Of a stretch of 64,000 nt of DNA, positions 2,757 to 63,962 are shown piece by piece; positions within the stretch are counted from its first letter, which is position 1, and each line of letters starts with the position of its first letter. The position numbers were made by a program, and so were the translations under genes. The stretch covers positions 17,491,629 to 17,555,628 of the forward strand of contig NC_092384.1 of the NCBI RefSeq assembly GCF_030028105.1. The letters run 5' to 3'. This DNA is from Mobula birostris. Lineage: Eukaryota. Under the pieces are notes generated by a model. The model was given only the letters and a program-made list of their open reading frames with translations. It was not told where the DNA came from and ran no database searches.

Positions 2757-2790
2757 CCTGTCTTAGTTACTGCAGTCGCTTCATTTGCAC
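2757..2790 (-). CDS. Receptor copy A, candidate cytoplasmic exon 2 (34 nt; GANEATAVTKT if entered in phase 1, VQMKRLQ* if phase 0)
   Basis: tttAG acceptor and GTAGTC donor are conserved in copy B (57426-57459) although the adjacent intron differs. Confidence 0.4.
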
Positions 2791-3771
2791 CTAAAGACGT
2801 GACGTGAAATTAAAACTAATTGCATCAACCTGGAGAAAGTGACTAATGAAACACAAGAAGAGAAATGTTATCAGGTAGGGAAAATTTAATGAGATTGAAG
2901 TGCTGGAAACCTGAAATAATACAAAGAAATGGAAGACACAAAACTTTAGTTGATCAGGAACCACCAGTTAAAGAGAAGCAGTTAATGTTGCATTCTGGCG
3001 AATGGTCTTCAATCTGGAATGTCAGCTGGTTCCCTTTCCAAAAATACCGTCAGTAGCTACCGATTGTTTACTGTTTGGATTCCAAATGAAAGAAGGCAAT
3101 ACTTTTATCCGTTTTCGGTATTTCTTCCCAAATTGAGGATAATGATCATTCAGCATAGCATCGTGGACCAGAAGATGCCATGTGGAGTTTCATTTAACAT
3201 GTGGTTATCATTGTTCATAACATACTACAGCGTTTTGTTGCAAGTATATTCGATTCCATTGCAGGTTATGCAATGCTGTGTGGATTTTCGTTGCGGATCG
3301 GGGTTAAAACTGCATATAATATTGCAAAGACCAGTTCAACAAAACATTACGTCGTTGCATTTTTTTATCTTTTTTACTATCCGTTGAGATCAAATGTAGC
3401 AGACATTAGGAATTGATTTGAAACGCACTGTACTTTCCCATTGTGCAGTAAACTGTGATTCTCGTAAACCAGCATCTACTAGTTTCTCGCAGTCTCAGAT
3501 GTTTGTTTAATTATTCGCCAAACCATGTTACCTTCCACTGGGAAACATTACCGCTCACCTTCCAATGCAACCGCTTGCGAACTGGTGTGGAATCTTGAAA
3601 GAACACAGGAAGCAGATGCAACGGGTACATGCAAATAAATCATGGATATATACTTGAAAATAGTTTTAAATTTTCCTGCTACGCTCCAAAGTTTTATGGA
3701 ATAAAATAGATTCATAATATCTATGCTATGCGTGTACCCTGCTCTTAAACAAGACGAGTCACGGCATCTAC

Positions 3772-3815
3772 CGGGTCTTCATTCTGACATCCAGCCAAAT
3801 AATTTGTGTTACGCC
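3772..3815 (-). CDS. Receptor copy A, cytoplasmic exon 1 (GRNTNYLAGCQNEDP)
   Basis: Long polypyrimidine tract TTTCTTTTTGTTTTCTTTTCTGAAG; phase 1 matches the TM exon; conserved in B at 58463-58506. The 3' boundary is uncertain. Confidence 0.6.
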
Positions 3816-4395
3816 CTTCAGAAAAGAAAACAAAAAGAAATAATTTGCATTGTAAACACTGAACATTATCCGTTTGATACCCAACGAATTAATCATCTAA
3901 GTGGAACTGCTGAAGTTACAGATCTTTCAGAAATTATTTGCTGGTAACAGTCGTGGTAATATACTCTGTTCTGCATTCATCTGCTGCTATGCTCAAAGGA
4001 TTTTGACTTTCAACGAGGCTGTAAAGTGATCATAGCATTACAGCGACAGTACTGTATTTAAATATTGTAACCAATATGGAAATTAAGACCAATGAGCCGT
4101 ACATAAGTTGGTCAATGTTCTTTACACAATCAGAGAGACTTTAGATCAACGCCAAGTCTTTTATGTTTCAAAATACGGATCTGCCATTTTACTGAAAAGG
4201 ACATTTGAAGAACTCCAAAGGGATATAGCAGCAATCGTGAATGAGATATGAAATACTTCCAGTGGACTGGTGAAATAGTTGAATTTTAAAATCCAGCTTG
4301 TATTGTGCCGGAATATTATCACTGAAATCCGGCTTCGAAAATCACGATCCATGTCCAATCATGCTGTAAATGTCATTTGCTGTTTTAAAGTTAAA

Positions 4396-4741
4396 GATCA
4401 TAATAGGAATCCTTAGTTTCATGAGACCATGGATTTGCCATTCGCTTGAACAACATCGGTGGTGTGTTAGAAAGTTTCCTTGGTAAGTTTCCAGGGCGCA
4501 GGCCTAAGCAAGTTTGTATGGAAGACCAGCAGTTGCCCATGCTGCCAGTCTCCCCTCTCCACGCCACGGATGTTGACCAAGGGAATGCCATTAGGACCCA
4601 TACAGCTTGGCACCGGTGTTGTCGCTATGTGTGGTTAAGTGCCTTCCTGAAGGACACACATGCTGCCTCAGTCAAGATCAATTAGCGACCTTCAAATCAC
4701 TGGACGAACTCCTTAACCACTTGGCCACGGGCCAACACTAA
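4396..4741 (-). mobile_element. tRNA-derived SINE, present in copy A only
   Basis: Reverse strand begins GTGGCCAAGTGGTTAAGG (A-box-like); absent from the aligned position in copy B (~59080). Confidence 0.7.
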
Positions 4742-4805
4742 ATATCATTAAAGCTTCTATTTTGTACGAATATACGTGATGTTTCTCAGCGATCTCAGTT
4801 CTTAC

Positions 4806-4910
4806 CGTGCGATCTCTTTCTCTTCAGCGAAATTATTATCAGAACTAAAATTGCCAATCCGCCGACTGCACATGTAAAAATTAATCTAAGAACAGCGCCT
4901 TGCAGATGTA
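4806..4910 (-). CDS. Receptor copy A, transmembrane exon VHLQGAVLRLIFTCAVGGLAILVLIIISLKRKRSH
   Basis: tttcctcCAG acceptor, G|GTAAG donor, 105 nt, phase 1-1; hydrophobic segment with an N-terminal Arg followed by a basic stop-transfer KRKR. Confidence 0.85.
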
Positions 4911-6161
4911 CTGGAGGAAACAAAGAAACCGTGAAGCATTTATACATCTGAAAACCAATCGACACGTGAGAATCAAAAATGCAGATCATTTTATAAGCTC
5001 CCTTCAAATTTCCCTACACAACGATGGGAAAACAGAACATATTAATGACAGAATATACAATATAGAACAAAGAAATCTGGTTTTTATTTTCTCCAGACAC
5101 ACGCGAGAAATTTACTAAGACTATGAATAGACTCGGCTGCATCTTCCTTTACTTCCCTTGACAATAGTTATCAGCACAACTATTGAACGTGTAAACATCA
5201 ATCCAAATACGATTCTAATCACGATTCAAATGGTTAAATCATGTCTGTCAAGAAGATTTCTCAGTACGATCAAAACCTAAAGATAACTCGTAGGAGTCCC
5301 GGTGCAGCAACAATTCGCTTCCGCATTACATGCTGAAATTCCTCGCTATGAGTTTAACACTGTATCCTCTAAGCCTCCTGAATGTGTATCGAGCATATTA
5401 AACATATTTTCCCACTGTTATGGTTTCCACAGGTTTAGGAGTGACAAACCCGAATTCATAGAAAACTGTTTTAATGAAAACATAGACCAAATTCGAGTCA
5501 TCCATTTGAATTGTGTTGCCTACTATTATTGGAAGGTAATTACGCAGAGACTAAATTTTGACAAAGTCTGTCCACAGTTTCGCTCCCTATGCATTCGGTC
5601 CAGGTGGCAATTAAGTGTCACTCCTCAGTGTTCAGGAATTCCTATTTTGATTCTGACTTTGCCCCAAAAAACTATGTCAATGAAATACACCTTTGCTCAA
5701 CAGCAGGTGGTTTCCCCCCATTGTTACATCATCATGCGATTCAGAGTTTACGTGTAGCTTTGCCTCATCTTTGACCAATGTCCAGAATTTTGTTACCTTA
5801 CACGTACAACACGAATTTAATTTCTTAATTCATCCTACACGATTTAAACTGAGGGTAAAAGAAATTTGATTTAAAAACCATTCACATTAAATGTTCACTG
5901 CAAACAAGTAATCTTAAAATTTCTCTCTTCTTCCGTGTTCGGATAGCTGTTCAGTTCCTGTTCTTAAGCAGATTTGATCTACCCAGCTATATCATTTGGG
6001 AACGTTTCCAACTTGCCCGGAACGCTAGAGTTTCTGAAAGTGTTGAAAATTCAGAGTAGCACACAAAGTACTGAAGGTACGCAGCAGATCAGGAGAGGAA
6101 TAAAGTAACGAGGTTTCGGTCCGAGATCTGATATCGGGACGCAATCAAGATACCATCTTAC

Positions 6162-6455
6162 CTTGCTCCAGGATGTGGCTGAAACAGGCAGGCACCGTGA
6201 GGGAGACATGCAACACCAGACAGATGTAAACATCTTTTCCCCAAGCAGACTGATTAATTTCCAATAAACTGTAAGCCTCATATAAACCCTCCGCCGTCCG
6301 GTTAATATCTGTTTTTATTCCAGTGAGAATTTGCCTGTTATTCTTTTGCCAGACGATTTGTAATTCCTTCGGGTAGAAGGCAGCTGTTTTACAGAGGAGC
6401 TTCCGAGGAGACGAAAACTCTGCAATAGGAACGATTTCCAATGGAGTTGGGGGAG
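6162..6455 (-). CDS. Receptor copy A, C1-set Ig domain exon
   Basis: LLCKTAAFYPKELQIVW...GLYEAYSLL...YICLVLHVSL fits the C1 pattern (C-x4-FYP-x4-W, YxCxVxH); ttcAAG acceptor, G|GTAAG donor, 294 nt, phase 1-1. Confidence 0.92.
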
Positions 6456-7789
6456 CTTGAATAAAAAGAGTTATATTGGGTGTTACCATCCATTTAGTTC
6501 AAGTAAATTCCTTTATCTTCCCGTCAATTACAATGACATCTCACTATCAAATTAGTTACCCGCCATAGGTTCCCAGCATTTTATAAATTATTTTAAGTTC
6601 AAATTCAAGTTCATAGTTAATAAACCACACAGATGTACATGGCTAAATGAAACATCCTTCTTTATACTTTATACTTTATACTATATACTTTATTGTCTTC
6701 TGGGGTCAACTGCAAAATGCAGTCCATGTATTCACACACAGCACGTGCAGTCACCATCCGGCAGATCCAGTGAAAAATAAACAAAGCAAAATCGAGGCAC
6801 CGTGCAGAGACAGATGAAAGGAAGTATTCGAAGAAGGCACAGAGCAGGCGAATCTAAGGGGTGAGAAGTGAAAAAGACATTCTGTTTTGAATGGTCTTTC
6901 AGCTTTATCACATGATTCTGTTTGCGGCAGTGCGTAGGTTTTGGAAAATATTCCTTTCTGTATTTTTTTCATTTCCAATTAAAACTGAACGATAAAACCT
7001 AAAATATTACAGATGTCCACACTCCGAACGCAAGAAGCTCTTGCACATTGGCAACTCATTTGCTCAGGTTGTTTTTCAGAGCTTACGTTGGAGCTTTCCA
7101 GTCATCAACATTCACTGATAGAGCTTTCCTCGGAATGTATATCATTGCTAGAAAATTTCTCCCGCATTTAATGTGTTGAATGTGGCAAATCCTACCCTCC
7201 ATGAAACAACTAGGAACGGAAAAGCGGAGATGATATTAACCGCATTTATTCTACATTTCTGTTCTTTCATAAACCTGTCGGCCTGCAGCAAAATGGTCGA
7301 AAATGACCTGGCACTGCTATACGAACGACGGTGCCCTGCAGAGAGGCAACCGAGGAGCTGAACGAACTCCGCTTCTCCCTACAGAGATTTCACTGAAAGG
7401 TAAGCCCAAAATTCACGATTTTCTAAACTTGGACTGCTTCCGCTGCAACTATGGTCCGTATTTAACTTAGGAAAGGCTATTTTCAGATTGCTTTATCAAT
7501 ATGTCACAACATTTAGCATTTTGCCCTGCCTACAATGGCCATCCTGAGCTCACGGTTGCCCGCACAGTACTGCCATGGCCCATATATAGATGACAGATGT
7601 TAACGTGCTTGTTGTCGTGAGGCAAATTAGTTTGTATAAATCCTCATGGCTCGAGATGGAGTCCCATCCGAAGTCTTGGGAGGCTCATGCATAATTTGAA
7701 GGTGCCTTGATAGGGGTATTCAAAATATCCTGACCCACGGGTGAGAAGCCGGAAGACTGGATATGACTAATGTTTTGTAGTTGTTCAAG

Positions 7790-8210
7790 AAAAGATCTAA
7801 GAAGACTCCGGGATCTTTTAGGCTGGTGAGACTGACGATTGTAAATTGTAATTTGTTGGCAATATTACAAGTGACAGGATGCGTAACTATTCAGATAGAA
7901 GTTCGAATAGCCATCAGGATTTTGTGCATGGTAAGTAATGTCTGGCTTATCTTAAAGAGTTTTTCGAGGAGTTTACCAGAGATCGTGTTGAAGGAAATGC
8001 AGTGGATGTTATTTACATGGCAATCCCTTGGGCAAAGTCCGTAATGAGAGGCTGATCAAGAAGGTCCGGTTGGAATTCAGGATGAATTAGTAAACTGCAT
8101 TTAACATTGGCTTGGCGGGAAAGCCAGGGAGTGGTTGTAGACGGCTTCCCTCTGACTGGAGGCCTATAACTAGAGGTGTGCCGCGGGGATCGGTGCTGGC
8201 TACGTTGATA
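7790..8210 (+). mobile_element. Degraded CR1 RT fragment in the V-C1 intron, shared with copy B
   Basis: Remnants of YRPVSL, SQHGF and SGVPQGSVL motifs; homologue at ~62100-62530, so it predates the duplication. Confidence 0.7.
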
Positions 8211-9081
8211 GTTCTTAAATAATTTTTTATGACAATGGATTAAACTGGTTCAGAATTTTTTTCAGATCTGCACAGTGGGTAACGAATGCAGACAGCTGTA
8301 AAATGGGCTGTAAAATGACAGCTGGAATTCATTCGCTTTCGAATTACATTCGTGCTCAGCTCTCTACCCTTTGCATTCTAACCCTATCAAAATTCATCTC
8401 GATATTACGATTTCTATTTCTCTCCCTATTTTGAATGGGGAAAGAGGTATAGATAGAAGTTTTGCAAAGCACATTTGGATTGATAATTTGCTGCGCGTGC
8501 GACAAATAGATACATTATATTACTATTAATTCTTTTGGATCTGGGTGAGTTTGTAACGTTGACATATCCTATAAGAGAGTAGATAAAATTGTTCATGATT
8601 TGCCTCATGTGTGATGGGAAATCGAGCTTTCCAACTACAGCCACTCACATTAGTAACAATATTATTTTAACATCTTGCTTGCAAAGCAAATATTACTTCA
8701 CTTGAAAATTAATTCCTTGTTTTTGAAGCACCTTCACGATGATAATGCTAAAATCGAAGGGCATCACTAACCTTGGACATTAGCTTTAAATAGGAGATTG
8801 CCGATCGATAGGTCTGCACTAACAGCAGTTGTAAGGAGTACGATACAGCAAACAGAATCAGCGTTATTTCTCGTCCAATTGACGTTGCCTAAAATGTAAT
8901 TATTTTGTTCTGTTCTTTTTAACTCTACAATTGGAGCTTGTAGAATGGGGTTTGCTTTAACGCGTGAAACAAATCCACTCTCGCTGTTTGTTTTATCAAA
9001 TAGTAACATTACATATTAATCTCATCATTAGCTTTAATTTATATTGCACAAAAGCGAAAATCTCCTCGCAGCCGCACTAAC

Positions 9082-9384
9082 CGAACACAGTGAGCTTGGA
9101 GCCACTTCCATTCCAGAAAGATCGTTCCCGATACTTTGTTCCACAGTAGTAAATTCCGGAATCGGCGAATTTCACATCCATAAGAATAAGCGTTCCTCTT
9201 GACTTTTCGAAACTAAATTGTTTTCTGCTGTCACTTTCTAAAAATGCATTCTCGCCTTCCCTCCACCAAAGAAAGTTAACAGTATCTTTTGATATTGGAG
9301 TATTGCAGTGCAAGGTAACATTCGTTCCGCCCGGAACGTCCAAGTCCGTAGGGAATTGATATACTCTGAACGCAGGCACTTCGA
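9082..9384 (-). CDS. Receptor copy A, V-set (germline-joined VJ-type) Ig domain exon
   Basis: VTLHC...FLWW...DSGIYYC plus a J-like WNGSGSKLTV in the same exon; CAG acceptor, G|GTTAGT donor, 303 nt, phase 1-1. Confidence 0.93.
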
Positions 9385-9598
9385 CTGTTGCCGGCGGAAA
9401 AAAAACAAGAGCATTAATAACAGCTACACACAGGGAATAAATAAGAACCTAAAGACGTACTGTATGTTACCGGATAACGAAGAGACAAAGACGACCGAAT
9501 TGCTCAACCGCTGAAACTAGGTATGCAGCGGGAAACCAGGTTTAAATTTTCTAAAATAGAATACTCAGTTGAGAAACGGAACATTTAACTTAGCATAC

Positions 9599-9653
9599 AT
9601 AGACAGGTAATAGCCAGGAGCGCCATGTACGAAACCGTAAATTTCTCTGACAT
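9599..9653 (-). CDS. Receptor copy A, leader (signal peptide) exon MSEKFTVSYMALLAITCL
   Basis: ATG, hydrophobic core, T|GTATGC phase-1 donor joining in frame to (F)EVPA-FRVYQ; conserved in B with one change. Confidence 0.75.
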
Positions 9654-9697
9654 ATTACAGAAACCGAACCCAGCAATATTGGGATACAAGTGATATT

Positions 9698-9815
9698 CTG
9701 AAGAGTTTGTGGAAGGAATAGAAATTCAAGGGTAAATATATGAACCGTGTAATCATGACGTAGGATGACGCCTCACCAAGACAGAAGCAGGTGTTTCAAA
9801 GATCCTTATACTGGG
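9698..9815 (-). promoter_or_regulatory. Possible short 5'UTR intron (9698-9776) and upstream TATA-like TATAAGG for copy A
   Basis: G|GTGAGG donor at 9776, CTCTTCAG acceptor at ~9698, TATAAGG near 9806-9812; motif evidence only. Confidence 0.2.
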
Positions 9816-10599: not shown

Positions 10600-10860
10600 T
10601 TACACCGAACTCAAAGACACTGAACGTTCCGAGAGTGTTTCAAGGACTCTGCTTTGAAGGTTGCTAGTCTGTTGGTTATTCGTTCCTTTTCGCCGTCTGC
10701 ACGATCTGCTCTTTCATTCTCGTTGGATGTTTGATACATATTTTTTTTAAGTGTCCATGATGTTTCTTTTTTTCTTGGCTGCCTGCGGGAAAACAAAACT
10801 CAGGGTTGTATATTGCTTACATAATTGATAGCAAATGTACGTTGATGTTGAATCGGACAA
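10600..10860 (+). repeat. Degraded LINE 3' tail
   Basis: 'ggctgcctg..aaa..tcagggttgtatat...aaatgtac.ttga' resembles a common retroelement 3' end; family unresolved. Confidence 0.3.
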
Positions 10861-14829: not shown

Positions 14830-17190
14830 CATATAACTATATAACAGTTACAGCACGGAAGCAGGCTATCTCGGCCCTTTTAGTCCGTGCCGAAATCTTA
14901 CCTAATCCCACCGACCTGCCCTCATCCTCTATTACTTTCCTGGCCATATAGCTGTCCAATTTAACTTTAAACGACAACGTCGAACCTGCCTCAACCACTT
15001 CTGCTGGAAGCGCGTTCCACAGAGCTACCATTCTCTGAGTAAGAAGCTTCCCCTCATGTCACCCCTAAACTTTTGTCCTTTAACTCTCAACTCATGTCCA
15101 CTTGTTTGCATTTCTCCCACTCTCCACGTCAACTCTATCTATCCCCCTCACAATTTTAAATACCTCTGTCAAGCCCCCTCTCAACTTTCTACATTCCAAA
15201 CAATAAAGACCCAACTTGTTCAACCTTTTTCTGTAACTTAGATGATGAAACACACGTAACATTCTAGTAAATATTCTCTGTACTCTCTCTATTTTGTTGA
15301 CATCTTTCCTATAATTCAGTGACCAAAACTGTACACAATGCTCCAAATTTGGCCTCACCAATGCCTTGTACAATTTCAACCTTACATCCCAACTCCTATA
15401 CTCAATGCTCTGAATTATAAAGGCCAACATATCAAAAGCTTTCTTCACCACTCTATCCATATAAGATTCCACCTTCAGTGAACTATGCACCATTATTCCT
15501 ACATCCCTCTGTTCTCAACATTCTTCAATGCCTTACCGTTTACCAAGTATGTCCTATTTTGATTAGTCCTACCAAAATGTAGCACCTCACATTTATCAGC
15601 ATTAAACTCCATCTGCCATCTTTCAGCCCACTCTTCTTACGGGCCTAAATCTCTCTGCAAGCTTTGAAAACCTACTTCATTATTTACAACTCCACCTGTC
15701 TAAGTATCATATGCATACTTACTCATCCAATTTACCACTCCATCATCTAGATCCTTAATGTATATGACAAATAACATTGGACCAGTACAGGTCCCTGAGG
15801 CACACCACTAGACACCGGCCTTCATTTTCACAAACCGTTATCCACCAAGACTCTTTGGCGTCACCCATCCAGCTACTGCTGAATTCATTTTACCACTTCA
15901 ATATTAATACCTAACGATTGAAACTTCCTAACCAGCCTTCCGTGTGGCAACTTGTCAAAGGCCTTACTGAAATCCATATAGACAACATGCACCACTTTAC
16001 CCTCGTCAGCTTTCCCAGCAACCTCTTCAAAAAATTCAATAAGATTTGTCAAACATGACCTTCCACGCACAAATCCATGTTGAGTGTTTCTAATCAGACT
16101 CTGTCTATCCAGATAATTATATATACCATCTCTAAGAATACTTTCCAACAATTTACCCACCACTGCCATCAAACTCACAGGCCGATTATTGCTAGGTTTA
16201 CTCTTAGAACCCTCTGTAAACAGTGGAACAACATGAGCAAAACGCATATCCTCCGGCACCATCCCCGTTTCTAATGACATTTGAAATATTTCTGTCAGAG
16301 CCCCTGTTATTTCCATACTAACTTCCCTCAAGGTCCTAGGGAATATCCTGTCAGGACCCGGAGATTTATCCACTTTAATATGCCTTAAATGTTCCAATAC
16401 TTCCTCTTCTTTAATCATCATAGTTTCCATAATTCCCTACCTGTTACCCTTATCTTACACAACTCAATATCCTTCTCCTCAGTGAATACCGAAGAAAAGA
16501 AATTGTTCAGAATTTTTCCCATCTCTTATGGCTCTACACATAGCTGTCCACGCTGATTCTCTAAGGGACCAATTTTATTCCTCACTATCCTTTTGCTCTT
16601 AATATAAAGGTAGAAACCCTTGGGATTTATTTTCACCTTACTTTCCAAAGCAACCTCAAATCTTATTTTAGCTTTACTAATTTTAATTCTTAAGATTATT
16701 TTACATTCTTTATATTCCTCTACCGCCTCATTTACTCCATGCTGCCTTTATTAATTGTAGATATCTCTGTTTTTCTAAACCAAGCTTCCAATATCCCTTG
16801 AAAACCATGGCTCCCTCAAACTTTTAATCTTTCCTTTCAACCTACCAGGAACATAAATATTCTGTACTCTCAAAATTTCACCTTTAAATGACCTCCATTT
16901 CTTTATTATATTCTTCCCATAAAACAAATTGTCACAATCCACTCCTTCTAAATCCTTTCGCATCTCCTCAAAGGTAGCCTTTCTCCAATCAAAAATCTCA
17001 ACCCTGTGTCCAGACCTATCCTTCTCCATAATTTGTATTGAAACTAATAGCATTGTGATCACTGGACCCGAAGTGCTCCCCAACACAAACCTCCTCCACC
17101 TGACCAGTCTCACTCTCTAGCAGCAGATCCAACACTGCCCCTTCTCTCGTTGGTACCTCTATGTATTGCTGCAAAAAATTATCCTGAGTG
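14830..17190 (-). mobile_element. 5'-truncated CR1 LINE ORF2 (end of endonuclease, linker, RT), frameshifted
   Basis: ORFs 16775..17113, 15885..16430 (KSPGPD, RPVSL, QHGF, YMDFSKAFDK) and 15092..15493; tail at ~14830. Confidence 0.9.
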
Positions 17191-18439
17191 TTAAATTATC
17201 CAGATGAGCGATTTTTTTTGCACAACCTTACTGTCCCTTTTCTATTTTCTATTTACGATTTATAATTTAAATTTGTAATGTATACTATGGATTTGTGATC
17301 CAGGGGGCGCGAAGCGCCGGGTCAGATATCACTGTGATGATTGTACGCTCTAATATCAATTGTTTGCGACAATAAAGTAAAATTATTGTCCATTTTTACA
17401 TTTAGTTTCTCATTTAAGTAATCAGAAAGGAAAAGGTGTTACCCCACTACCGAGATCAAGTTCACATTGCCTTTTAATGTGTAAAGTAAGTTGTTCACTA
17501 TTCAATTTTCTCAGAGAATGAGTCACACATGAATAGCAACTATTTAGCTATTCTTAAAAACATTGCTTCGTGTAGTTATCTCCAGATTGAACATGTCGTA
17601 GAATCAGGAAGCAAATACACCGCTGCACAGCTTCAGAAATATTTAACTGACAGAAGCAGGTTTTCAAAAAAGTGTTATTTTCAACTTATTGTCCTAATGT
17701 TAAACGCAAACCAGCAGTCCGCAAAATACGTGTTTCAGAGAGGCGCAATCATTGACCACAGATCTTCCATGATGTCACCAACAGATTCGCGCGTGCAGTT
17801 CTGTTCTCAGACAGTGTGTTACTTCCCGTAAAGGCAAATTATAATCACCTTCTTGGTAAACTGATACTTAATTAAAACCTCTATTCCGAACATCTTTTTA
17901 TAGAAAACTTGCACCAGCTCGCATGCAAACATTCACATTTGCGAATTACGAACAGGAAGTTAGCATATATTTGCTTTGAGTGGATACGAAAACTCATCGG
18001 AATGGAACATAGTAATATATCCTGATTGCATTTCAAATGGGCAGTGAAAATAGAAAAGGAAAGTACCAAGGTACACACGGATACACTTATTTAAATATTT
18101 TAATATGTTAACGTAAATGCTTCGATTCATGACTCACGGATGTGGAGTTTGAATTTGGGTTTCCAGAAACTGAATTCCTTGCACATATTCCTAGCATTCC
18201 ATATTCAATAGTCAGCAAGCTGAACCGTTACTCTATTTACTTATCTATTTTGATAGGCCACTTAATATTCATTGAATATGGAATTTTAATCTCGGTTTCT
18301 GACTCTACCGTAATCCATAAAGCTCCTGATCTCCGAAGGTTGAAATGATCCGCGAGTTAAGTACGCCATTTGTGAGAACATTCATCTGCTGAGGCACATG
18401 GCGTGAAACGATGGTTGGGTTGCTCGATACAGATTACGG

Positions 18440-23997: not shown

Positions 23998-26900
23998 CCC
24001 TTATCCTTCAAAGGATTTTTACCGGCATAAAAATTATAGGCATGAATGCATTATTCGATACACACATATACAGGGTCATCAGCTATTCGGCTAATACAGA
24101 GAACTTTAATTTGTCTACACCTTGACAAACAGTCAGCAATCACATTTTCCGTTCCTTTTATATGTTTTATTTTAATATCCTCTAAGACCAGGCTCCAACT
24201 TAGCAATTTTTGTTTTTTATCCCTCATAGTGGCCAAAAACACTAATGGGTTGTGATCAGTGTAAATTCTCAGTGGTTTCCGTCCTGGACAGATATAACAA
24301 AGATCGTCCCACACCGATTTAGAATTCTTTGGCAAGAGCTTAGTAAGAGGCAGGGTAATATTCGCAAAGTTTTTGCAAAACTCCCGATAGTACCCCACCA
24401 TCCCCAAGAACCTTCTCAGGGCTCTCTTGTCTGTCGGGGTGGGGACTTCAGAGATAGCCCGCACCTTAGCCTGCATCGGTGCCAGCTGCCCCTGTCTTAC
24501 CACAAATCCCAGATAAGTGATCTTTCCGTGGCCGAATTCACTTTTTGCGTGGTTCACTGTCAGGCTGGCTTCAAACAGCTTTTTAGACAGCACCTCTACT
24601 GCCACAATGTGCTCCTCCCACGTGTCACTCCAGACCACTAAATCGCCAATATACGCTTCTGCGTTCTTTAGCCCTTTTGTCACTGAATTAATCATCCTAT
24701 AGGGGTGTTGCTTACAAGGCTGACCTGATGTGACAACAACACCATGTACCGGCTCTTTGCATCGCCTCGGGACATCCGGACATACGTGTGCGTGTCGGTT
24801 AATTATCTTTCTCAGCGGCTCGTTCTGTTCAGGGGTTAAGTGAGAGAACTCATCAGCAAAGTTGGCCAAAACAATAGAGTTCTCCCATCTGGTCGGCACC
24901 ATACTTACCTTTTCAAAATGGGTTTTCCCCTTATCAGGTGGCACCCTAGCCTCAATAATTTTCGTGATAACACCGACTAGGTCTGCTCGCCTATCGTGGC
25001 AAGCTGTTGCATATCAATAGCCTGTAATTGTGTTAGCTCACGTCTACAATAGTCAATAGCATCCATCCTCCTGTGCGGCAAGTAAAACTCTTTCATGATT
25101 CTATCGACTATCCTCCTTACACCAAAATGTTCACCATGGGGTATTTTGTGGGCCAGGTTAAAAATCTCATCCCCATAAATTTTCGGCACCACCCCCATTC
25201 CTCATCTGCGGCCACGGTAGTTGGTCTCCATTTCCTCCTTAGTACTCCCTCCTTCACATAATAGCCCACTGGCTCCCTTTTTAATTCTGCTTCGGAGAGA
25301 GCTGTCTCCGTCAAAACCATTAGCTCCTCGTCTCGTTCCTGTGCCTGTATAAATTCCTTCCTTGCTAATGATAAGTCTAACTCAACTCCCTTACTTTCTT
25401 CCGTTTCACTACGCCCCTTCTTTTCACTTTCTTACCCCTCCTGGTACAAGGCTGGTAAAAACGTCTCAGCTAAATCTACATTCGCTTCGGCAGCCTTTCT
25501 GGAGATGCGCCGAGTCACTGCGCAAACGGGATAAGCCTGTGAGTCCATGGGCAGGTTGGCTTGTCAGTTTTACTGCTGGGTACACCTCTCCGTCGGCGAG
25601 GTCATTACCGAGTAACATCTCCACGTCCTCCATCGGTAGTTCGGGCCTCACCCCGATCGTTACCGGTCCGGAGATCAAGTCGCTTTTTAGGTGTATCTGG
25701 TGCAAAGGTACCGCTTCAGTCTCTTTCCCAATGCCTCTTATCACACTGACCTCCCCAGTCTCGGTCTTTGAACTAAAGTCTAAAACACTCCTCAACATCA
25801 GTGACTGACAAGCTCCAGCGTCTCTCCAGATCCGCACTGGAACTGCGTTTGACCCCTCCTTCACCGACACCAATCCGGCCGAAATAAACTTCTCGCGCCC
25901 TTCCTGAACTCTATCAGACCTCTTCTCCCCTAGCGGTTTGTTTGCCGGCTCAATACAGCCAGTCGGAGTCGTTTTCCTTTCCCCGTCTCCTTCTTTGGGG
26001 CAAAGCACCTGGACGCAAAGTGACCGGCCTTCCCACAATTATAGCATACGACCCCAGGAGACTTCCTACCAAACTGCTTCCCGTCTTCCTTATCCTTCTC
26101 ACTAGTGCCTGGCTTACTTTTTGGCTTTTCCAGCGAACTCTCTCCGCCCTCTCGACTACCCCTGTTGTAGCTTTTACTCGGGGTAAACTTCACTGTGTGT
26201 GCCAACGCGTACTCATCCGCTAACTTAGCAGTTGCGACTAAGGTTTCTGCCTCTTTCTCATCTAGATAAGGCCTCATACCTTCAGGGACACAACCTTTAA
26301 ACTGCTCAATCAGTATTACCTGTAGCAGTCTGTCATAATCCCCACTGACCCCTTTCCAGGCGCACCAACGCTCACAATACATCTGCATCTCACGGGCTAA
26401 CTCTAAATACGTGCGGCCCCACTGCTTCCTCGCATTCCGGAACCTCTGCTGGTATGCCTCCAGGACCAACTCGTAAATCCTGAGTATCGCCTCTTTCACC
26501 ACATCATACCTCTGGGCATCTTCTGCGGACAATGCCGAGTAAGCTTGCTGGGCTTTTCCTTTAAGCACGCTGTGAAGCAAAACAGCCCACTTATCCCTCG
26601 GCCAGTCCTGACTTGCAGCGACCTTTTCAAAATGTAGAAAGTACCGATCAACATCAGCCTCCTCAAATTGGGGAACCAGCCTAACCTCCTGAGTAGCCCT
26701 GAACCCTCCACCTTGGTTCGGCATGGGCCCCTGTGCTAACCTCATCCTTAACTTCCCCAGCTCAAATTCCCTTCCTCTCTGTTTCTCCCTCTCTTCTCGT
26801 TCGAACTGCCTGTCCCTCTCTTCTCGCTCTAACTGCCAGTCCCTCTATTCTCGCTCCAGCTGTTTTACCCGGAACTTGTGTTCGAGTCTCAATTTTTCAA

Positions 26901-42700: not shown

Positions 42701-43265
42701 CGCCGCCAAGCTGCGAGAACCCAAGCCTCGAAGATCCCGCCGCCAAGCTGCGAGAACCCAAGCCTCGAAGATCCCGCCGCCAAGCTGCGAGAACCCAAGC
42801 CTCGAAGATCCCGCCGCCAAGCTGCGAGAACCCAAGCCTCGAAGATCCCGCCGCCAAGCTGCGAGAACCCAAGCCTCGAAGATCCCGCCGCCAAGCTGCG
42901 AGAACCCAAGCCCCCAGCCTGCAGCCTCAAGAGTAAAGATCCCAGCCTGTCTCCAAGCTCAGGCCTCTAGACCCCAGACACGTCCTGTCCTGAAGCTATG
43001 TTATGTCTTTGCCTGGTTCTGGGGTCGGAGCCCGCGGCAAGACCCAGGTTCTGGGTCCTTGTCCAATCTTGGGCTCGGAGTCGAAGCCTTTTCTCCTAAT
43101 CCCTGGTTTCTCGTCCTGGTCCCGCTTTCACGAGCCCAAGTCTGCATTCTTGTCCCTGCTCCCTGCCTGTATCCTGTCACGTCCCTTGTCTAGTCAAGTC
43201 CTGTTCCTTGTACTTCATTGTCTATGTCTCGTATTTAGGATCGTTCACAGCACCCTAGTGTGACA
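39754..43265 (+). mobile_element. LTR-like element inflated to 3.5 kb by an internal minisatellite
   Basis: Begins TGTCATGGTCCGGTCC and ends GTGTGACA; TSD only partial (ACCCC/ACCGA). Confidence 0.7.
40486..42912. repeat. 37-bp minisatellite, about 65-66 tandem copies (CCAAGCTCCGAGAACCCAAGCCTCCAAGATCCCGYCG)
   Basis: Unit read directly; the 37-aa periodicity of the translated ORFs equals 3 x 37 nt. Confidence 0.97.
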
Positions 43266-54202: not shown

Positions 54203-54334
54203 TCACAGCTTCTTTGATGTATTTACATCTGCGTATAATGTATGTTTGCTTTGATCTTTGGATGCCGGTGCGCATTTCGAATCGGGAATCTGCAGAGTGG
54301 CGTTAGTCAGTTTGTCAGCTCCACTTCCAGTAGT
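54203..54334 (-). CDS. Receptor copy B, probable terminal cytoplasmic exon TTGSGADKLTNATLQIPDSKCAPASKDQSKHTLYADVNTSKKL* (ITSM TLYADV)
   Basis: TTGCATTACTTTCACAG acceptor, 43 codons plus TGA, AATAAA about 165 nt downstream (~54030-54040). Confidence 0.65.
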   Translation of the reverse strand, partial: TTGSGADKLTNATLQIPDSKCAPASKDQSKHTLYADVNTSKKL

Positions 54335-56230: not shown

Positions 56231-57425
56231 GGGGATTATCTATGACGTGTTTTATATTTTGTTACAGTGTCAATGGTATGCTTAAGTTTGTAAAATTAAC
56301 TTCCTCTTGGATGATGATTTTATATATGAACCCTTTGGGGTACTCCGGTTTCCTCCCAGATTCCAAAGACTTAGAGGTTAGGATGTCAATTGATCACGTG
56401 GGTGTTACTGAGCTGCATGGGCTAAGTGTACCGGAAGAGCCTATAACCGTGCTACATCTCTGATGCAAGTCTATATCATAATCATGCTGATCTCCCTGCT
56501 TTACCTGGGAATAGATAACGCGCTCCTCCGGTTGGCGATCTTTGCGAAATCGTTTGCTGACGCTGTGGTTTAGTGAAGCGTAGGCAGTGGTGTGCTCAAC
56601 CGGTGCTTGTGCAGCCTGTTAGAAAAACATATTTAATACAGCTAACTGATACAGAACTCAGTGATCATAAACTAAATTAGAGTTGTAAAACCTAACACCG
56701 AGGATAAAAAAATATGTTGGAATAACATTTTGTCTGTGCACAATGATACTGTCCATACATTATACCGGAGGTGGGATCTCGAACGTTTCAGGCTGGAAAT
56801 CGCTATGTTTAGATTTTCAGAACACCGCTTATAACAGTCCTAGGGAGAGGATGGTGTTCTCAGTTCTGGCCATCTCTGTTTTCTTCAGCTCCTAAATCCT
56901 ATCTCTTACGTCGCTCTAAATTCTGTGCATGGGCACAGGCCTATCTTGGCACAGGATCTATCTTTTACGCATGCGTCGCATTATTGTATTCATTGTCCTG
57001 ATCAGAATTCGTCTGAAACTCTGATCCTTACAGTTCATATTATTTAAGTTAAGAATATTGGAGCAAATGGCAAGTCCTGATGCTAAGTGTCGCTTAACTC
57101 AAGCCCGTAACACGGGAGCGGCATCCTGGGCTTTCGTTGATATGATTGGTTTTCCTGGTGAATCACTTAAATTGCGATCGAAGTAGGTAGAGTCAATCGA
57201 CTTGGTCGTTGCAGTAAATCATAAAAATGGTAATTGTATTGCTGAAATAATGGCATAGCATTCCAGAGTAATAAAGTAATAGTAAAAATGTAATCATGAA
57301 TGCTTCAGCTTCAACTTAAATATTGCTGTAAGAAGTAGCCCTAAATTTCTGGAAGTTTTACAAACACTGCTGGAAATTTTAGCGGTATTCTACCATTATG
57401 AAATTAGTGATGTGTGCATGACTAC

Positions 57426-57459
57426 CTTATCTTAGCTGCTGCAGTCGCTTCATTTGCAC
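57426..57459 (-). CDS. Receptor copy B, candidate cytoplasmic exon 2 (GANEATAAAKI)
   Basis: taCAG acceptor and AAG|GTAGTC donor; homologue of 2757-2790. Confidence 0.45.
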
Positions 57460-58462
57460 CTGTAGTCTTTAGGTAAAATTAAAACGAAATTTGTTGTACT
57501 GGGGAAAGTGATTAATGAAACACTAGAAGACAAATGTTATCAGGAGAATGAATCCAGGCGGAAAAAAAAACATTGAAGTGCGGGAAACATGAAGTAAAAC
57601 AGAGAAATAGAATACAGAAAATTTTTGTAGATCATGAACCACCAGTTAAACAGAGATAGTTAACGTTCACTTTGCATTCTGCGGTCGTCAATCTAGAGTG
57701 TCAACTGGTTCCCTTTCCAAAATCGGTCAGTAGCTACAGATTATTTTCTGCTTTGAATCCAAATGGGAGAGGACAATACTTTTATCCGTTTTAGGCTTTG
57801 TTTCCCAAATTGAGGATGATAATCATTCAGCGTAGCATCGTGGACTAGAAGGCGTCATGTGGGATTTCGTTTAACATGCGGTTATTATTGTTCACCACAT
57901 ACTACAAGGTCTTGTTGCAAGTATATTCGATACCATTGCAGGTTACGCACTGCTGTGCGTATCTTTTTGCAGATCGGGGTTAAAACTGCATTTAATATTG
58001 CAAGAACCATTTCAATAAAACAAGATTCCGTTACATTTTTACCTTGATGCTGTCCGTCAGTCAAATATAGTATACATTACGAATTGATTCGTGCACCTAC
58101 GGTAATTTCCCATTGTCCAGTCAACTGCGATTCTCGTAAACTAGCATTAAGTAGTTTCTCACACTCTCAGATATGTGTTGAATTACTCGTCAAAACAACT
58201 CACAATCCAATGGTAAATATTACCGTTCACCTGGCAATCCAACCGGTTATGAACCGGTCAGGAACCTTGAAAGGTTACAGGAAGCAGATGCAAGGAGAAT
58301 ATTCAAATAAATCTTGGATGCATACTTGAAAATAAATAATTGACGTGGAAAATTGTTTTATTTTCCCTACCACGCTCCAAAGTGTTATGCAATAAAATAC
58401 ATTCATAATATCTTTGCTTTGCAAATATCCCGCTCTGAAACAAGACGAGTCACTTCACCTAC

Positions 58463-58506
58463 CGGGTCTTCATTCTGACATCCCTCCAAAGAATTTGTGT
58501 TACCCC
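58463..58506 (-). CDS. Receptor copy B, cytoplasmic exon 1 (GGNTNSLEGCQNEDP; may extend 4 nt to 58459)
   Basis: Same acceptor as A; two overlapping donors, CCG|GTAGGT and TAG|GTGAAG. Confidence 0.6.
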
Positions 58507-59145
58507 CTTCAGAAAAGAGAACAAAAATAAATGATTTGCATTGTAAACATTGAACATTTTTCATTTGATACCAATCGAATTAATAGTGTAAGTGGAACTG
58601 CTGAAGGTACGGATCTTGCAGAAAATACTTGTTGGTAACAGTCGTGCTAATATAGTGTTCGCATTAAGTTGGTGCTAAGCTCAGAAGGCATTGACTTCCA
58701 ACGAGGTTGTAAAGTTATCATAGCATAACAGCGGCGGTGCTGTACTTAAGTATGGCAAACAAAATGGAAATTAAAAGCAATGAGACGTGCGTAAGTTGGT
58801 CAATGTTCTTTGCACAATCAGAGGGAGTTTAGATATACGCCAAGACGTTTATGTTTCAAAATACGGATCTACCATTGTATGGAAAAGACATTTGAAGAAC
58901 TCCAAAGGGATATAACGGCATTCGTAAATGAGATATGAAATAATTCCAGTGGAATGGTGAAATAATTAAATTTTAAGATCAGGGATGTATTGTGACAGAA
59001 TATTATCACAGAGATCCGACTTCGAAAATCGTGACCCATGTCCAATCATTCTGTAAATGTCATTTACTGTTTTGAAGTTAAATAACATTAAAGCTTCTAT
59101 TTTATACGAATAGAGGTGATGTTTAGAAGCGATCAGTTTCCTTAC

Positions 59146-59244
59146 CGTGTGATCTCTTTAACTTCAGTCTCAGCAAAAGTATTATCAGAATTAAAATTGC
59201 CGATCCGCCCGCTGCACGTTCGAGAATCAATCTGGTATCAGCGC
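59146..59244 (-). CDS. Receptor copy B, TM exon GADTRLILERAAGGSAILILIILLLRLKLKRSH
   Basis: TTTCTTTTTCAAG acceptor, G|GTAAG donor, 99 nt, phase 1-1, in frame. Confidence 0.75.
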
Positions 59245-60500
59245 CTTGAAAAAGAAACCGTGAACCATTGATACAACTAAACACAAATCCACACATGACA
59301 AATAATAGTGCAAACTATTCTTTAGGCTCCTTTCATATCTCACCACACAATGATTGGAAAATGCACAGAATATACAATATAAAACAAAGATATCCGAATT
59401 TAGTTTCTCCAGACACATACGAGCTATTTTCTGAGACTAAGAATAGGCTCGGCTGCATCTTCCTATACTTCTCTTGACAATAGATATCAGCAAAACTATA
59501 GAACGTGTAAACATCAAACCAGATACGATTCTGATCTCGATTCAACCGGTTAAATCATGTCTGTCAAGAAGATTCTTTCGTACGATCAAAACCTAAAGGT
59601 AACTCGTTGACTCGCCACAGGAGTCCCGGTGCAGCAACAATTCGCTTCCGCATTACATGCTGAAATTACTCGTTAACTTCATGAGTTTATAACACTGTAC
59701 TCTCTAAGCCTCCTGAATGTGCATCGAGCATATTAAACGTATATTCCCACTGTTATGGTTTCCACAGGTTTAGGAGTGACAAACCCGAGTTCATGGAAAA
59801 CTGCGTAATGAAAACATAGACCAAACTCGAGTCACCTATTTGAATTGTGTTGCCTACTATTATTGGAAGGTAATTACGCGGAGACTAAATTTTGACAAAG
59901 TCTGTCCACAGTTTCGCTCCCTATGCATTCGTTTCAGGTGGCAATTAAGTGTCACGCCTCAGTGTTCAGGAATTCCTATCTTGATTCAGATTTTGCCCCG
60001 TCTCCACATTTTTTTCCGGTAAAACTATGTCAATTAAGTACACCTTCGCTCATCAGCAGATGGTTTCCCCTGTTGTTACATCACCATGAGTTTCAGAATT
60101 AGTTTTACTTTGTCTCATCTTTGACTAATATCCAGAATTTTGTTACCTTACAAGTACTACACGAATTTAATTTCTTAATTCATCCTACACGATTTAAACT
60201 GAGGGTATGAGAAATGTGTTTGTAACACCATTCACATTGAATGTTCACTGCAAACAAGTAATCTTCAAATTTCGCCCTTCTTCTCTGTTTGGTTAGCTAT
60301 TCCGCCCCTGTTCTTAACCAGGTTTGATCTACCCACCTGTATCGTTTCAAACTTCTCGGAACGCTAGAGATTCTGAACGTGTTGAAAACTCAGAGCAGCA
60401 CACAAAATACCAAAGGTACGCAGCAGATCAGGAGAGGAATAAAGTAACGACGTTTAGATCCGAGACCTGATGTCAGGACGCAATCAAGACAGCATCTTAC

Positions 60501-60794
60501 CTTGCTCCAGGACGTGGCTGAAACAGGCAGGCACCGTGAGGGAGACATGCAACACCAGGCAGATGTAAACATCTTTTCCCCAAGCAGACTGATTAGTTTC
60601 CAATAAACTGTAAGCCTCATATAAACCCTCCGCCGTCCGGTTAATATCTGTTTTTATTCCAGTGAGAATTTGCCTGTTATTCGTTTGCCAGACGATTTGT
60701 AATTCCTTCGGGTAGAAGGCAGCTGTTTTACAGAGGAGCTTCCGAGGAGCCGAAAACTCTGCAATAGGAACGATTTCCAATGGAGTTGGGGGAG
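60501..60794 (-). CDS. Receptor copy B, C1-set Ig exon
   Basis: 5 nt differences from 6162-6455; splice sites intact. Confidence 0.92.
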
Positions 60795-62099
60795 CTTGAA
60801 TAAAAAGAGAGTTATATTGGGTGTTACCATCCATTTAGTTCAACTAAATTCCTTTATCTTCCCGTCAATTACAATGACATCTCACTATCAAATTAGTTAC
60901 CCGCCATAGGTTCACAGCATTTTATAAATTATTTTAATTTCAAGTTCATGTTCATAGTTAATAAAACACACAGATGTACATGGCTAAATGAAACATGATT
61001 CATCTGGGGTCAACTGCAAAATGCAGTCCATGTATTCACACACAGCACGTCCAGTCACCATCCAGCACATACAGTGCAAACTAAACGAAGCAAAATTGAG
61101 TCACCGTGCAGAGACAGATGAAAGGAAAAATTCGAAGAAGGCACCGAGAAGGCGAATCTAAGGGGTGAGAGGTGAGAAAGACATTCTGTTTTGAATGGTC
61201 TTTCAGCTTTATCACATGATACTGTTTGCGGCGGCGTGTTGGCTTTGGAAAATATTCCTTTCTGCATTTTTTTTTTATTTCCAATAAAAACTGAACTATA
61301 AAACCCAAAATATACAGATGTCCACACTACGAACGCAAGAAGCTCTTGCACATTGGTTTAATATGCTGGCAACTCATTTGTTCAGGTAGCTTTTCAGAGC
61401 TTACGTTGGAGTTTTCCAGTTATAAACATTCACTGATAGAGCTTTCCTCGGAATGTATATCATTGCTAGAAAATTTCTCCCGCATTTAATGTGTTGAATG
61501 TGGCAAATCCTACCCTCCATGAAACAACTAGGAACGGGAAAGAGAGATGATATTAAGCGCATTTATTCTACATTTCTATTCTTTCATAAACCTGTCGGCC
61601 TGCAGCAAAATGGTCGAAAATGACCTGACACTGCTATACGAACGATGGTGCCCTGCAGAGAGGCAACCCAGGAGCTGAACGAACTCCGCTTCTCTCTGCA
61701 GAGATTTCACTGAAAGGTAAGCCCAAAATTCACGATTTTGTAAACGTGAACTGCTTCCGCTTCAACTATGGTCCGTATCTAACTTAGGAAAGGCTATTTT
61801 CAGATTGCTTTATCAATATGTCACAACATTTAGCATTTTTCCCTGCCTACAATTGCCATCCTGAGTTCACGGTTGCCCCCACAGCACTGCCATGGCCCAT
61901 ATACAGATGACAGATGTTAACGTGCTTGTTGCCGTGAGGCAAATTACTTTGTATAAATCCTCAAGGCCCGAGGTGGAGTCCCATCCGAAGTCTTGGGAGG
62001 CTCGTGCATAATTTGAAGGTGCCTTGATAGAGGTATTCAAAATATCCTGACCCACGGGTGAGAAGCCAGAGGACTGGATATGACTAATGTTTTTTAGGT

Positions 62100-62530
62100 G
62101 TTCAAGAAAAGTTCTAAGAAGACGCAGGGATCTTTTAGGCTGGTAAGACTGACGATTGTAAATGATAACTTGTTACAAATATTCCAAGTGACAAGATACA
62201 TAACTATTTAGATAGAAGTTGGAATAGCCATCAGGATTTTGTGCATGGTAAGTAGTGTCTGGCTTATCTTGAATAGCTTATCGAGGAGTTTACCAGAGAT
62301 CATGTTGAAGGAAATGCAGTGGATGTTGTCTACATGGCAATCCCTTGGGCAAAGTCCGTAATGAGAGGCTGATCAAGAAGGTTCGGTTGGCATTCAGGAT
62401 GTAGTAGTAAACTGCATTTCACATTGGCTTGGGGGGAAAGCCAGGGGGTGGCTGTCGACGGCTTCTCTCTGACTGGAGGCCTATAACTAGAGGTGTGCCG
62501 CGGGGATCGGTGCTGGCTACGTTGATAGTT
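62100..62530 (+). mobile_element. Degraded CR1 RT fragment, homologue of 7790-8210
   Basis: Colinear match within the duplicated intron. Confidence 0.7.
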
Positions 62531-63392
62531 CTTAATTAATTTTTTATGACAATGGATTAAACTGGTTGAGAATTATTTTCAGATCTGCACAATGGGTAAC
62601 GAATGCAGACAGCTGTAAAATGGGCTGTAAAATGACAGCTGGAATTCATTCGCTTTCGAATTCCATTCGTGCTCAGCTCTCTACCCTTTACATTATAACC
62701 CTATCAAAATTCATCTCGATATTACGATTTCTATTTCTCTCCCTATTTTGAATGGGGAAAGAGGTATAGATATTCAGAAATTTTGCAAAGCACATTTGGA
62801 TTGATAATTTGCAACAAATTGGTACATTATATTGCTATTAATTCTTTTGGATCTGGGTGAGTTTGTAACCTTGTCATATCCTATAAGAGAGTTGATAAAA
62901 TTGTTCATGATTTGCCTCATGTGTGATGGGAAATCGAGCTTTCCAACTACAGCCACTCACATTAGTAACAATATTATTTCAACATCTTGCCTGCAATGCA
63001 AACATTACTTCACTTGCAAATAATTCCTTGTTTTTGAAGCACCTTCTCGATAATAATGCTAAAATCGAAGGGCATCACTAACCTTGGACATTAGCTTTAA
63101 ATAGGAGATTGTCGATCGATAGGTCTGCACTGACAGCAGTTGTAAGGAGTACGATACAGCAAACAGAATCAGCGTTATTTCTCGTCCAATTGACGCTGCC
63201 TAAAATGTGATTATTTTATTCTGTTCTTTTTAACTCTACAATTGGAGCTTGTAGAATGGGGTTTGCTTTGACGCGTGAAACAAATCCGCTCTCGCTGTTT
63301 GTTTTATCAAATAGTAACATTACATATTAATCTCATCATTAGCTTTAATTTAAATTGCACAAAAGCGAAAATCTCCTCGTAGCCGCACTAAC

Positions 63393-63695
63393 CGAACACA
63401 GTGAGCTTGGAGCCACTTCCATTCCAGAAAGATTGTTCCCGATACTTTGCTCCACAGTAGTAAATTCCGGAATCGGCGAATTTCACATCCAGAAGAACAA
63501 GCGTTCCTCTTGTCTTTTCGAGACTAAATCGTTTTCTGCTGTCACTTTCTAAAAATGCATTCTCGCCTTCCCTCCACCAAAGAAAGCTAACAGTATCTTT
63601 TGATATTTGAGTATTGCAGTGCAAGGTAACACTCGTCCCGCCCGGAACGTCCAAGTCCGTAGGGAATTGATATACTCTGAACGCAGGCACTTCGA
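63393..63695 (-). CDS. Receptor copy B, VJ-type V-set Ig exon
   Basis: 11 nt differences from 9082-9384; canonical Cys/Trp/Cys and WNGSGSKLTV intact. Confidence 0.93.
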
Positions 63696-63907
63696 CTACT
63701 GCCGGAAAAATAAACAAGAGCATTAATAACAGCTACACACAGGGAATAAATAAGAACCTAAAGACCTGCTGGATGTTACTGGATAATGAAGAGACAAAGA
63801 CGACCGAATTGCTCAACCGCTGAAACTAGGTATGCAGCGCGAACCCAGGTTTAAGTTTTCTAAAATAGAATACTCAGTTGAGAAACGGAACATTTAACTT
63901 AGCATAC

Positions 63908-63962
63908 ATAGACAGGTAATAGCCAGGAGCGCCATGTACGAAACCGTAAGTTTCTCTGACAT
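63908..63962 (-). CDS. Receptor copy B, leader exon MSEKLTVSYMALLAITCL
   Basis: Homologue of 9599-9653 with the same T|GTATGC donor. Confidence 0.75.

Follow-up and report, generated by a model that had tools for sequence, protein, structure and literature searches.

The window analysed here, a stretch of 64,000 nucleotides from the manta Mobula birostris (RefSeq contig NC_092384.1, positions 17,491,629 to 17,555,628), carries two related minus-strand genes, termed gene A (9653-~3511) and gene B (63962-54203). Both contain a leader exon, an exon of joined V and J segments (VJ), one C1 exon and a transmembrane (TM) exon. Judging from their sequences, it is probable that they are tandem VJ-C1-TM paralogues, B being an inhibitory-type receptor and A a derivative without the tail and with a converted ectodomain. 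After boundary mapping, all introns in the two models are GT-AG and all reading frames are open. The RNA data comprised four runs assembled into contigs, of which X3 comes from the same species and X1 from a slightly diverged organism.

Gene B is intact, and its 7 exons encode 346 amino acids (aa):

63908-63962, minus strand: exon 1, leader (open model, mapped boundaries)
63393-63698, minus strand: V exon, VJ ending in …YYCGAKYREQSFWNGSGSKLTVF (Pfam V-set, E 1.5e-10)
60501-60794, minus strand: C1-set exon (Pfam C1-set, E 1e-9; AG/GT borders)
59146-59244, minus strand: TM exon, GADTRLILERAAGGSAILILIILLLRLKLKRSH (X3 RNA contig, 0 mismatches)
58463-58506, minus strand: cyt1 exon, GGNTNSLEGCQNEDP (GT..AG joint 59146>58506; collinear with RefSeq model P0152)
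56505-56615, minus strand: exon 6, the tyrosine-motif exon, AAQAPVEHTTAYASLNHSVSKRFRKDRQPEERVIYSQ (phase-0 acceptor, CAG/GTAAAG donor)
54203-54334, minus strand: last coding exon, containing LTNATL and ending in …KHTLYADVNTSKKL and a stop (TLYADV at 54224-54241, minus strand)

The sole in-frame acceptor of the B V exon is the downstream CCGGCAG, and this exon is 97% identical to M. hypostoma XP_062923618. The phase 0 of exon 6 fits where cyt1 ends, and its peptide lines up in order with residues 267-303 of P0152 (34/37 identical). An earlier reading made from the letters of the window alone (the sequence-only reading) had placed here a separate third tail bearing an immunoreceptor tyrosine-based inhibitory motif (ITIM), but the phases, the GT-AG borders and the collinearity with P0152 identify 56615-56505 as exon 6 of B. 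The downstream exon with TLYADV, which that reading had assigned to B, is exactly the last coding exon of this gene and not part of another. The 3' untranslated region (UTR) of B extends to an AATAAA at 54040. The B protein, unlike that of A, was not among the RefSeq-derived matches, where no exact-sequence search with spliced B was made, and gene B may lack an annotation in the manta assembly.

Gene A contains the following features:

9599-9653, minus strand: exon 1, leader (ATG at 9653, hydrophobic leader MSEKFTVSYMALLAITCL, GT donor; tblastn match of RefSeq model P0160)
9082-9384, minus strand: V exon, germline-joined VJ ending in …YYCGTKYRERSFWNGSGSKLTVF (Pfam V-set, E 3e-10; AG/GT borders; identical to P0160)
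6162-6455, minus strand: C1-set exon (Pfam C1-set, E 2e-10; AG/GT borders; RNA contig joint at 6162)
4806-4910 (main acceptor start 4898), minus strand: TM exon, GAVLRLIFTCAVGGLAILVLIIISLKRKRSH (conserved donor CACG/GTAAGA; X1 contig joints 6162>4907 and 4805>3814)
3815-3772, minus strand: cyt1 exon, GRNTNYLAGCQNEDP (GT..AG joint 4805>3814 in X1)
3745-3815, minus strand: cyt1 read-through to a stop at 3745, ending in …VDAVTRLV (open reading frame (ORF) model of 271 aa)
3511-3593, minus strand: alternative terminal exon of P0160, DSTPVRKRLHWKVSGNVSQWKVTWFGE and a stop (tblastn 27/28 identity; AG acceptor; 275-aa ORF)
1835-1945, minus strand: relic of the tyrosine-motif exon (alignment with B exon 6; translation; tblastn with P0152 and P0031)

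The V, C1 and TM parts of A agree fully with P0160 (M. birostris, "Ig lambda-1 light chain-like", 276 aa), whose 6143-bp gene span coincides with A 9653-3511. Exon 1 of A has a further in-frame donor at 9590. The TM peptide singled out by the sequence-only reading, GAVLRLIFTCAVGGLAILVLIIISL, is indeed present at 4825-4899 on the minus strand. The TM exon acceptors 4898, 4907 and 4910 are all in frame and add 0, 3 or 4 residues, respectively; B is without the 17-bp stretch that carries the upstream acceptor options of A.

In both copies the V-set and C1-set matches lie above the Pfam curated cut-offs. The V exon runs unbroken from the first beta strand through YYC and the J-like motif FWNGSGSKLTVF to the GT donor, and no recombination signal sequence (RSS) of heptamer, spacer and nonamer was found in A or B; a lone heptamer-like string sits within the LTVF codons with no spacer-nonamer after it. 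Since V and J occupy one exon without an RSS, they are read as germline-joined, and A and B are, on this evidence, non-rearranging VJ-C1 receptor chains, the architecture proposed for them earlier. Each gene has one C1 exon; tblastn with family proteins revealed no second immunoglobulin (Ig) exon, and an RNA contig splices C1 straight to TM. An AlphaFold model has a predicted local distance difference test (pLDDT) score >90 across most of both Ig domains, with a disordered tail. A cysteine near the membrane, in the VPACFSH of A (~6190-6170) and B (~60530-60510), both on the minus strand, is also found in P0152 and P0162, with serine in most family members. This cysteine could form an interchain disulfide.

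The tail of B includes three tyrosine motifs, TAYASL, VIYSQT and TLYADV, of which TLYADV is a canonical immunoreceptor tyrosine-based switch motif (ITSM) and TAYASL is ITSM-like. Gene A may end after TM/cyt1 either by read-through of the cyt1 donor, giving 271 aa, or by splicing of the TM exon to 3593-3511, giving 275 aa, and a tyrosine motif is absent from all three possible A tails, as expected from the short tail that had been suggested. The A cyt1 donor, GTAGAT vs GTAGGT in B, is weakened. In the relic exon of A, TAYASL has become TAFASL and a TAG stop (1864-1862) precedes an ITIM-like ISYYL. Since the relic carries both the tyrosine-to-phenylalanine change and the stop, gene A evidently descends from a motif-bearing (ITIM-bearing) ancestor. 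An A copy of the last coding exon was not found in the window, where homology to B stops at 1661 in high-copy repeats, near the window start. The contrast between an inhibitory B and a non-inhibitory A is well supported by these sequences.

Local blastn identified A 1661-9691 and B 56336-64000 as one large direct segmental duplication, the B copy being truncated by the window end, in three successive blocks of 94%, 86.5% and 79% identity. Nucleotide identity between A and B varies along the genes as follows:

Leader: 98.4%
Intron 1: 94.5%
V: 96.4%
Intron 2: 94.6%
C1: 98.3%
Intron 3: 87.9%
TM exon: 79.6%
Intron 4: 82.8%
cyt1: 90.9%
Next 1.8 kb after cyt1: 79.5%
Motif exon: 79.6%

The two minus-strand paralogues thus have near-identical leader, V and C1 exons and diverge from the TM exon onward, just as the sequence-only reading had observed. 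In 200-column windows the identity steps from ~92% to ~79% at about A 5150 / B 59466, a point that lies 250 bp 5' of the TM exon, so that it is ~94-98% overall 5' of the step and ~80% 3' of it. Because the step is also present in introns, it points to later homogenisation of the 5' half and not to selection on the TM, and the pattern is consistent with gene conversion across the ectodomain half of A and B. Within the converted part, 10/11 differences in V and 4/5 in C1 are nonsynonymous, counts too few for significance, and the ratio of nonsynonymous to synonymous differences per site (pN/pS) between the V exons is ~2.7. This excess would be compatible with selection on the binding domain that is either relaxed or diversifying. 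One of the V-exon differences abolishes an N-glycosylation site in B.

Splicing of C1 to TM to cyt1 occurs for both TM types. A 215-nt contig from X3 contains the B TM exon with 0 mismatches, joined to a C1 exon and to 58506, both by GT..AG joints. A 189-nt contig from X1 runs from C1 (6162) through an A-type TM exon (4/103 mismatches) to cyt1 (3814); across the TM region of this contig, 19 positions and 6 gaps separate A from B. A further X3 contig of 305 nt joins 56505 to 54334, with two T>A substitutions (54236 and 54304) that change TLYADV to TFYADV and LTNATL to LTYATL and reproduce the P0152 sequence. Downstream of the A cyt1 exon, contigs at 3293-3732, 2960-3124 and 3006-3202 probably represent a long A 3' UTR, down to ~2960, that follows read-through. 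No contig in the four runs supported the TM-to-3593 join of A.

By their protein matches, A and B are members of a large multigene family of sharks and rays that RefSeq has already predicted, with models from Mobula hypostoma, M. birostris, Scyliorhinus, Carcharodon, Heterodontus, Heptranchias and Narcine. The RefSeq names are inconsistent and include SIRP-alpha-like, NCR3LG1-like, Ig lambda-1-like, tapasin-related-like, HLA-DO-beta-like and PD-L1-like. An exhaustive phmmer search with the B V exon returned P0003 at 97% identity, followed by single-domain matches at 35-57%. P0152 (346 aa, gene span 10220 bp) is taken to be another paralogue, since its V is just 77% identical to that of B. Together with P0031 and P0159 it is of B type, with 346-350 aa, exons ordered as in B and the motif series TAYASL / IIYSQT / LTYAAL / TLYADV. 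On the ectodomain tree, long motif-bearing members and short-tailed members with a TM arginine (Arg) are interleaved across several shark and ray species. A second Mobula pair lies outside the window and consists of P0163, with an LTYAVL/ALYADV tail, and P0169/P0172, with a mid-TM Arg and a short tail, their ectodomains being near-identical. Three word-index protein searches, one with a 29-sequence profile, gave no non-elasmobranch protein at E<1e-8, and AFDB clusters outside the family reached at most 21% identity. A carpet-shark query aimed at the nurse-shark NCR3 link gave no named NCR3 entry. The suggestion that this system might be undescribed is therefore only partly borne out: a literature search of partial coverage located no published description of the elasmobranch family, nor shark SIRP or paired-receptor work, but RefSeq already predicts A and many of its relatives.

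In the account that we favor, B would represent the ancestral state, an inhibitory-type receptor. A ligand bound by its V domain would trigger phosphorylation of the TAYASL, VIYSQT and TLYADV tyrosines, which would serve as docking sites for SH2 phosphatases or adaptors of the SHP-1/2 type. We infer all of these signalling steps from the motifs, on top of the gene structures, splice joints, homology, conversion step and relic exon described above. Gene A would have arisen by duplication of a B-like gene and loss of the tail, so that it ends after the short cyt1 exon with its motif exon dead. Gene conversion would keep the A ectodomain 96-98% identical to that of B while the TM and tail modules stay ~20% diverged, and A would offer a binding surface almost like that of B but send no inhibitory signal.

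Several observations weigh against this account. In spliced B, VIYSQ precedes T and not V, leaving no canonical ITIM, and the canonical ITIM of the family, LTYAAL/LTYATL (P0031, P0152, P0159 and others), is LTNATL in B (~54310-54293), so that the ITSM TLYADV is the sole canonical motif in the B tail. The B TM (ADTRLILERAAGGSAILILIILLL) includes an unavoidable glutamate (Glu)-Arg pair and is marginally hydrophobic, with a Hessa sum of +1.6. The best 19-residue TM core of A leaves its Arg out (sum -3.2), and the same column is R or K in the ITIM-bearing relatives B, P0152, P0159 and P0031. Among the transcripts, the contig with the 56505>54334 joint belongs to P0152 and shows the splice pattern for the subfamily, not for B itself, while the spliced A-type contig comes from the run of a related organism and X3 covers A by unspliced pieces only. 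Finally, identity with SIRP, the mammalian system discussed below, is ~18%.

The Arg of A lies at the outer edge of the TM, one residue beyond a 20-residue hydrophobic core, and windows of 21-23 residues that include it remain favourable. Ahead of the shared Arg/Lys column, the residues are polar ADT in the ITIM-bearing relatives vs AVL in A. Tentatively, A may couple through this outer-leaflet Arg to an adaptor with an acidic TM, for which FcR-gamma/CD3-zeta had been suggested, and thereby be activating; with slightly lower probability, it could instead be a non-signalling counterpart like SIRP-gamma. An activating A is hypothetical and is not established by the Arg, because the residue lies at the membrane edge and is common to the ITIM-bearing relatives. 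The mid-TM Arg of short-tailed members (P0169/P0172 ILIFRSALGG, P0059 IVIPRLVLGF, P0194 and P0087) aligns with the Arg in the LILER of B, not with that of A. The B TM is identical in the RefSeq models P0152 and P0151, and models of two Mobula species carry the same TM. The remodelled TM attributed to B by the sequence-only reading is thus real (ADTRLILER...), but B, too, has an Arg at the column of the one emphasised for A. The proposed paired receptor system retains its linked genes, shared ectodomain and tail contrast, and the TM charges give an ambiguous picture.

Alternatively, A could be a duplicate in decay, on its way to becoming a pseudogene and without a role of its own, and the "pair" one working inhibitory gene plus debris. 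The dead motif exon, the repeat inserted in intron 4, the weakened cyt1 donor and the unspliced pieces that alone represent A in the same-species run would all agree with decay, and the 14/16 nonsynonymous differences in V and C1 would fit relaxed constraint. However, all five exons of A have open frames and canonical splice sites, RefSeq treats A as a coding gene, and an A-type TM exon of 96% identity is spliced from C1 to cyt1 in the RNA of another organism. Short-tailed members also recur across the family, and the ectodomain has been kept intact by gene conversion, which makes decay of A an unlikely explanation. Less likely still is that the contrast arises from alternative 3' processing within single genes, with cyt1 read-through producing a tail-less protein and onward splicing a motif-bearing tail. 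The model of P0003, a protein that clusters with B in the ectodomain tree and is the probable orthologue of B in M. hypostoma, ends by cyt1 read-through (…NEDPVGEVTRLVSERDICKAKIL and a stop), the corresponding frame of B is open (58462-58406), P0165, P0167, P0170 and P0171 terminate right after cyt1, and A itself uses cyt1 read-through. Such processing would nevertheless leave the separate, ~20%-diverged TM exons unexplained; the dead motif exon makes the tail loss of A genetic and not regulatory, and none of the four runs holds a contig reading through B cyt1. The idea that B is adaptor-coupled or dual-function via its intramembrane Arg, with A plainly non-signalling, can almost be set aside, since an adjacent Glu may neutralise this Arg, P0003 has C in its place and B retains a long tyrosine-motif tail, even though the LILER Arg aligns with the mid-TM Arg of P0169/P0172, P0059, P0087 and P0194, the best TM windows differ in Hessa sum (B +1.6 vs A -3.2) and the B TM is conserved in P0152 and P0151.

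Comparison with known receptors places the ectodomain of both genes among generic antigen-receptor-like V-C1 units, with SIRP as the nearest named mammalian relative by sequence and predicted structure. Searching solved structures with a single sequence gave SIRP-alpha 2wng (E 4e-16, V and first C1 collinear), followed by SIRP-gamma, UrIg2, and Ig and T-cell receptor (TCR) chains; no other solved structure outside Ig gives a better collinear V-C1 match than 2wng. A PDB profile search with 29 sequences ranked a lambda-containing chain first, then UrIg2 (9dmx, E 8e-32) and SIRP-alpha (3e-29), the best single V-C stretch being a lambda chain at 64.7 bits. Foldseek against Swiss-Prot listed SIRP-alpha, then B7-H3, PD-L1, TCR-beta, B7-H6, butyrophilins and TAPBPL, its PDB matches were antibody light chains, and Atlas gave a SIRP-beta-like "SIRBL" cluster (TM-score 0.82). 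NKp30 was absent from the 60 best PDB matches and from the matches listed.

Paired receptors have similar, linked ectodomains, one member carrying an ITIM/ITSM tail and the other a short tail and a charged TM residue that binds an adaptor with an immunoreceptor tyrosine-based activation motif. Within SIRP, SIRP-alpha is inhibitory, its tail carrying ITIMs to which SHP-1/2 bind, SIRP-beta1 has a short tail and a basic TM residue and is coupled to DAP12, and SIRP-gamma is non-signalling, and the tail of SIRP-alpha resembles the four ordered tyrosine motifs of the present family. Like A and B, SIRP begins with a V domain that bears a J-like G-x-G motif and precedes a C1-set domain, and it comprises linked genes with similar ectodomains and opposite or absent signalling. 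However, SIRP has two C1 domains (V-C1-C1) where A and B have one, and its charged residue is a mid-TM lysine where that of A is an Arg at the TM edge. Ectodomains homogenised by gene conversion are likewise seen in SIRP, Siglec-11/16 and KIR pairs. PRARP reportedly combines a non-rearranging VJ, C1, TM and a cytoplasmic ITIM, and is said to occur in chicken, bony fish, amphibians and reptiles; by description only, this architecture is matched by B and its relatives. NKp30/NCR3 has a germline VJ with a J motif of the N-G-[ST]-G-x-x-L-x-V type, as here, and an outer-leaflet TM Arg that resembles that of A, but its VJ is joined to stalk/TM without C1 whereas A and B have a spliced-in C1-set exon. 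The V-J-C1 order is common to A, B, Ig lambda and TCR beta. In Ig and TCR, RSS-flanked V and J rearrange, whereas in A and B they are germline-fused and accompanied by a TM and, in B, a tyrosine-motif tail. Foldseek matches to CD276, PD-L1 and B7-H6 (E 1e-14 to 1e-16) were no better than SIRP-alpha. Proteins of the B7/NCR3LG1 type are V-C ligands that have neither a J motif nor a paired ITIM design, and the J motif and tyrosine-motif tails of the present family speak against placing it in B7. The elasmobranch UrIg/UrIg2 are non-rearranging VJ-C1 chains like A and B, but UrIg2 differs from a two-domain TM receptor with tyrosine-motif tails. According to PMC12227049, the UrIg2 construct whose structure was solved is V-C1-C2-C3, with N-terminal domains that homodimerise.

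The surroundings of the two genes are repetitive. The stretch is free of N runs, no flanking genes lie within the window, only repeats, and Rfam and tRNA scans of it gave no matches. The ~45 kb separating the two copies contains retroelement-like ORFs and a minisatellite; tblastn with 21 family proteins found no further family exons between 10 kb and 54 kb, and a tyrosine-motif scan of all frames found merely chance ITIM-like strings outside the B exons. The following were located:

15095-17195 (minus strand), 24054-26844 (minus strand), 28105-29158 (plus strand), 31946-34786 (minus strand) and 36289-37717 (plus strand): long ORFs that, by eye, resemble reverse transcriptase/endonuclease of long interspersed nuclear elements and retrovirus-like gag-pol
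40363-42966: minisatellite with a GC-rich 37-bp unit, >65 copies, ~95% identity
4395-4739 (345 bp), strand not assigned: high-copy repeat insertion in A intron 4, missing from B (gap in the A/B blastn alignment)

The inserted repeat has an RNA-contig depth in the thousands in 4/4 runs and no tRNA or Rfam match.

In conclusion, no new principle is involved here. The concept of VJ-C1 paired receptors is already known from SIRP, and a VJ-C1-ITIM design has been reported for PRARP. It is conceivable, though improbable, that the family is the surviving minimal VJ-C1 form ancestral to SIRP-type paired receptors, perhaps as a dimer disulfide-linked via the VPACFSH cysteine. If true, it would be a germline-encoded, non-rearranging, TCR-like dimeric receptor with inhibitory and adaptor-coupled versions, and would bear on the precursors of antigen receptors before RAG. 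The family has been given at least 6 unrelated annotation names, and a proper description would aid comparative immunology. The locus illustrates the making of a paired receptor in cartilaginous fish, through duplication, loss of the inhibitory tail with a fossil exon left behind, and gene conversion that preserves the ectodomain. It also adds evidence that the oldest jawed vertebrates employ germline VJ-C1 chains as ordinary receptors of the innate type.

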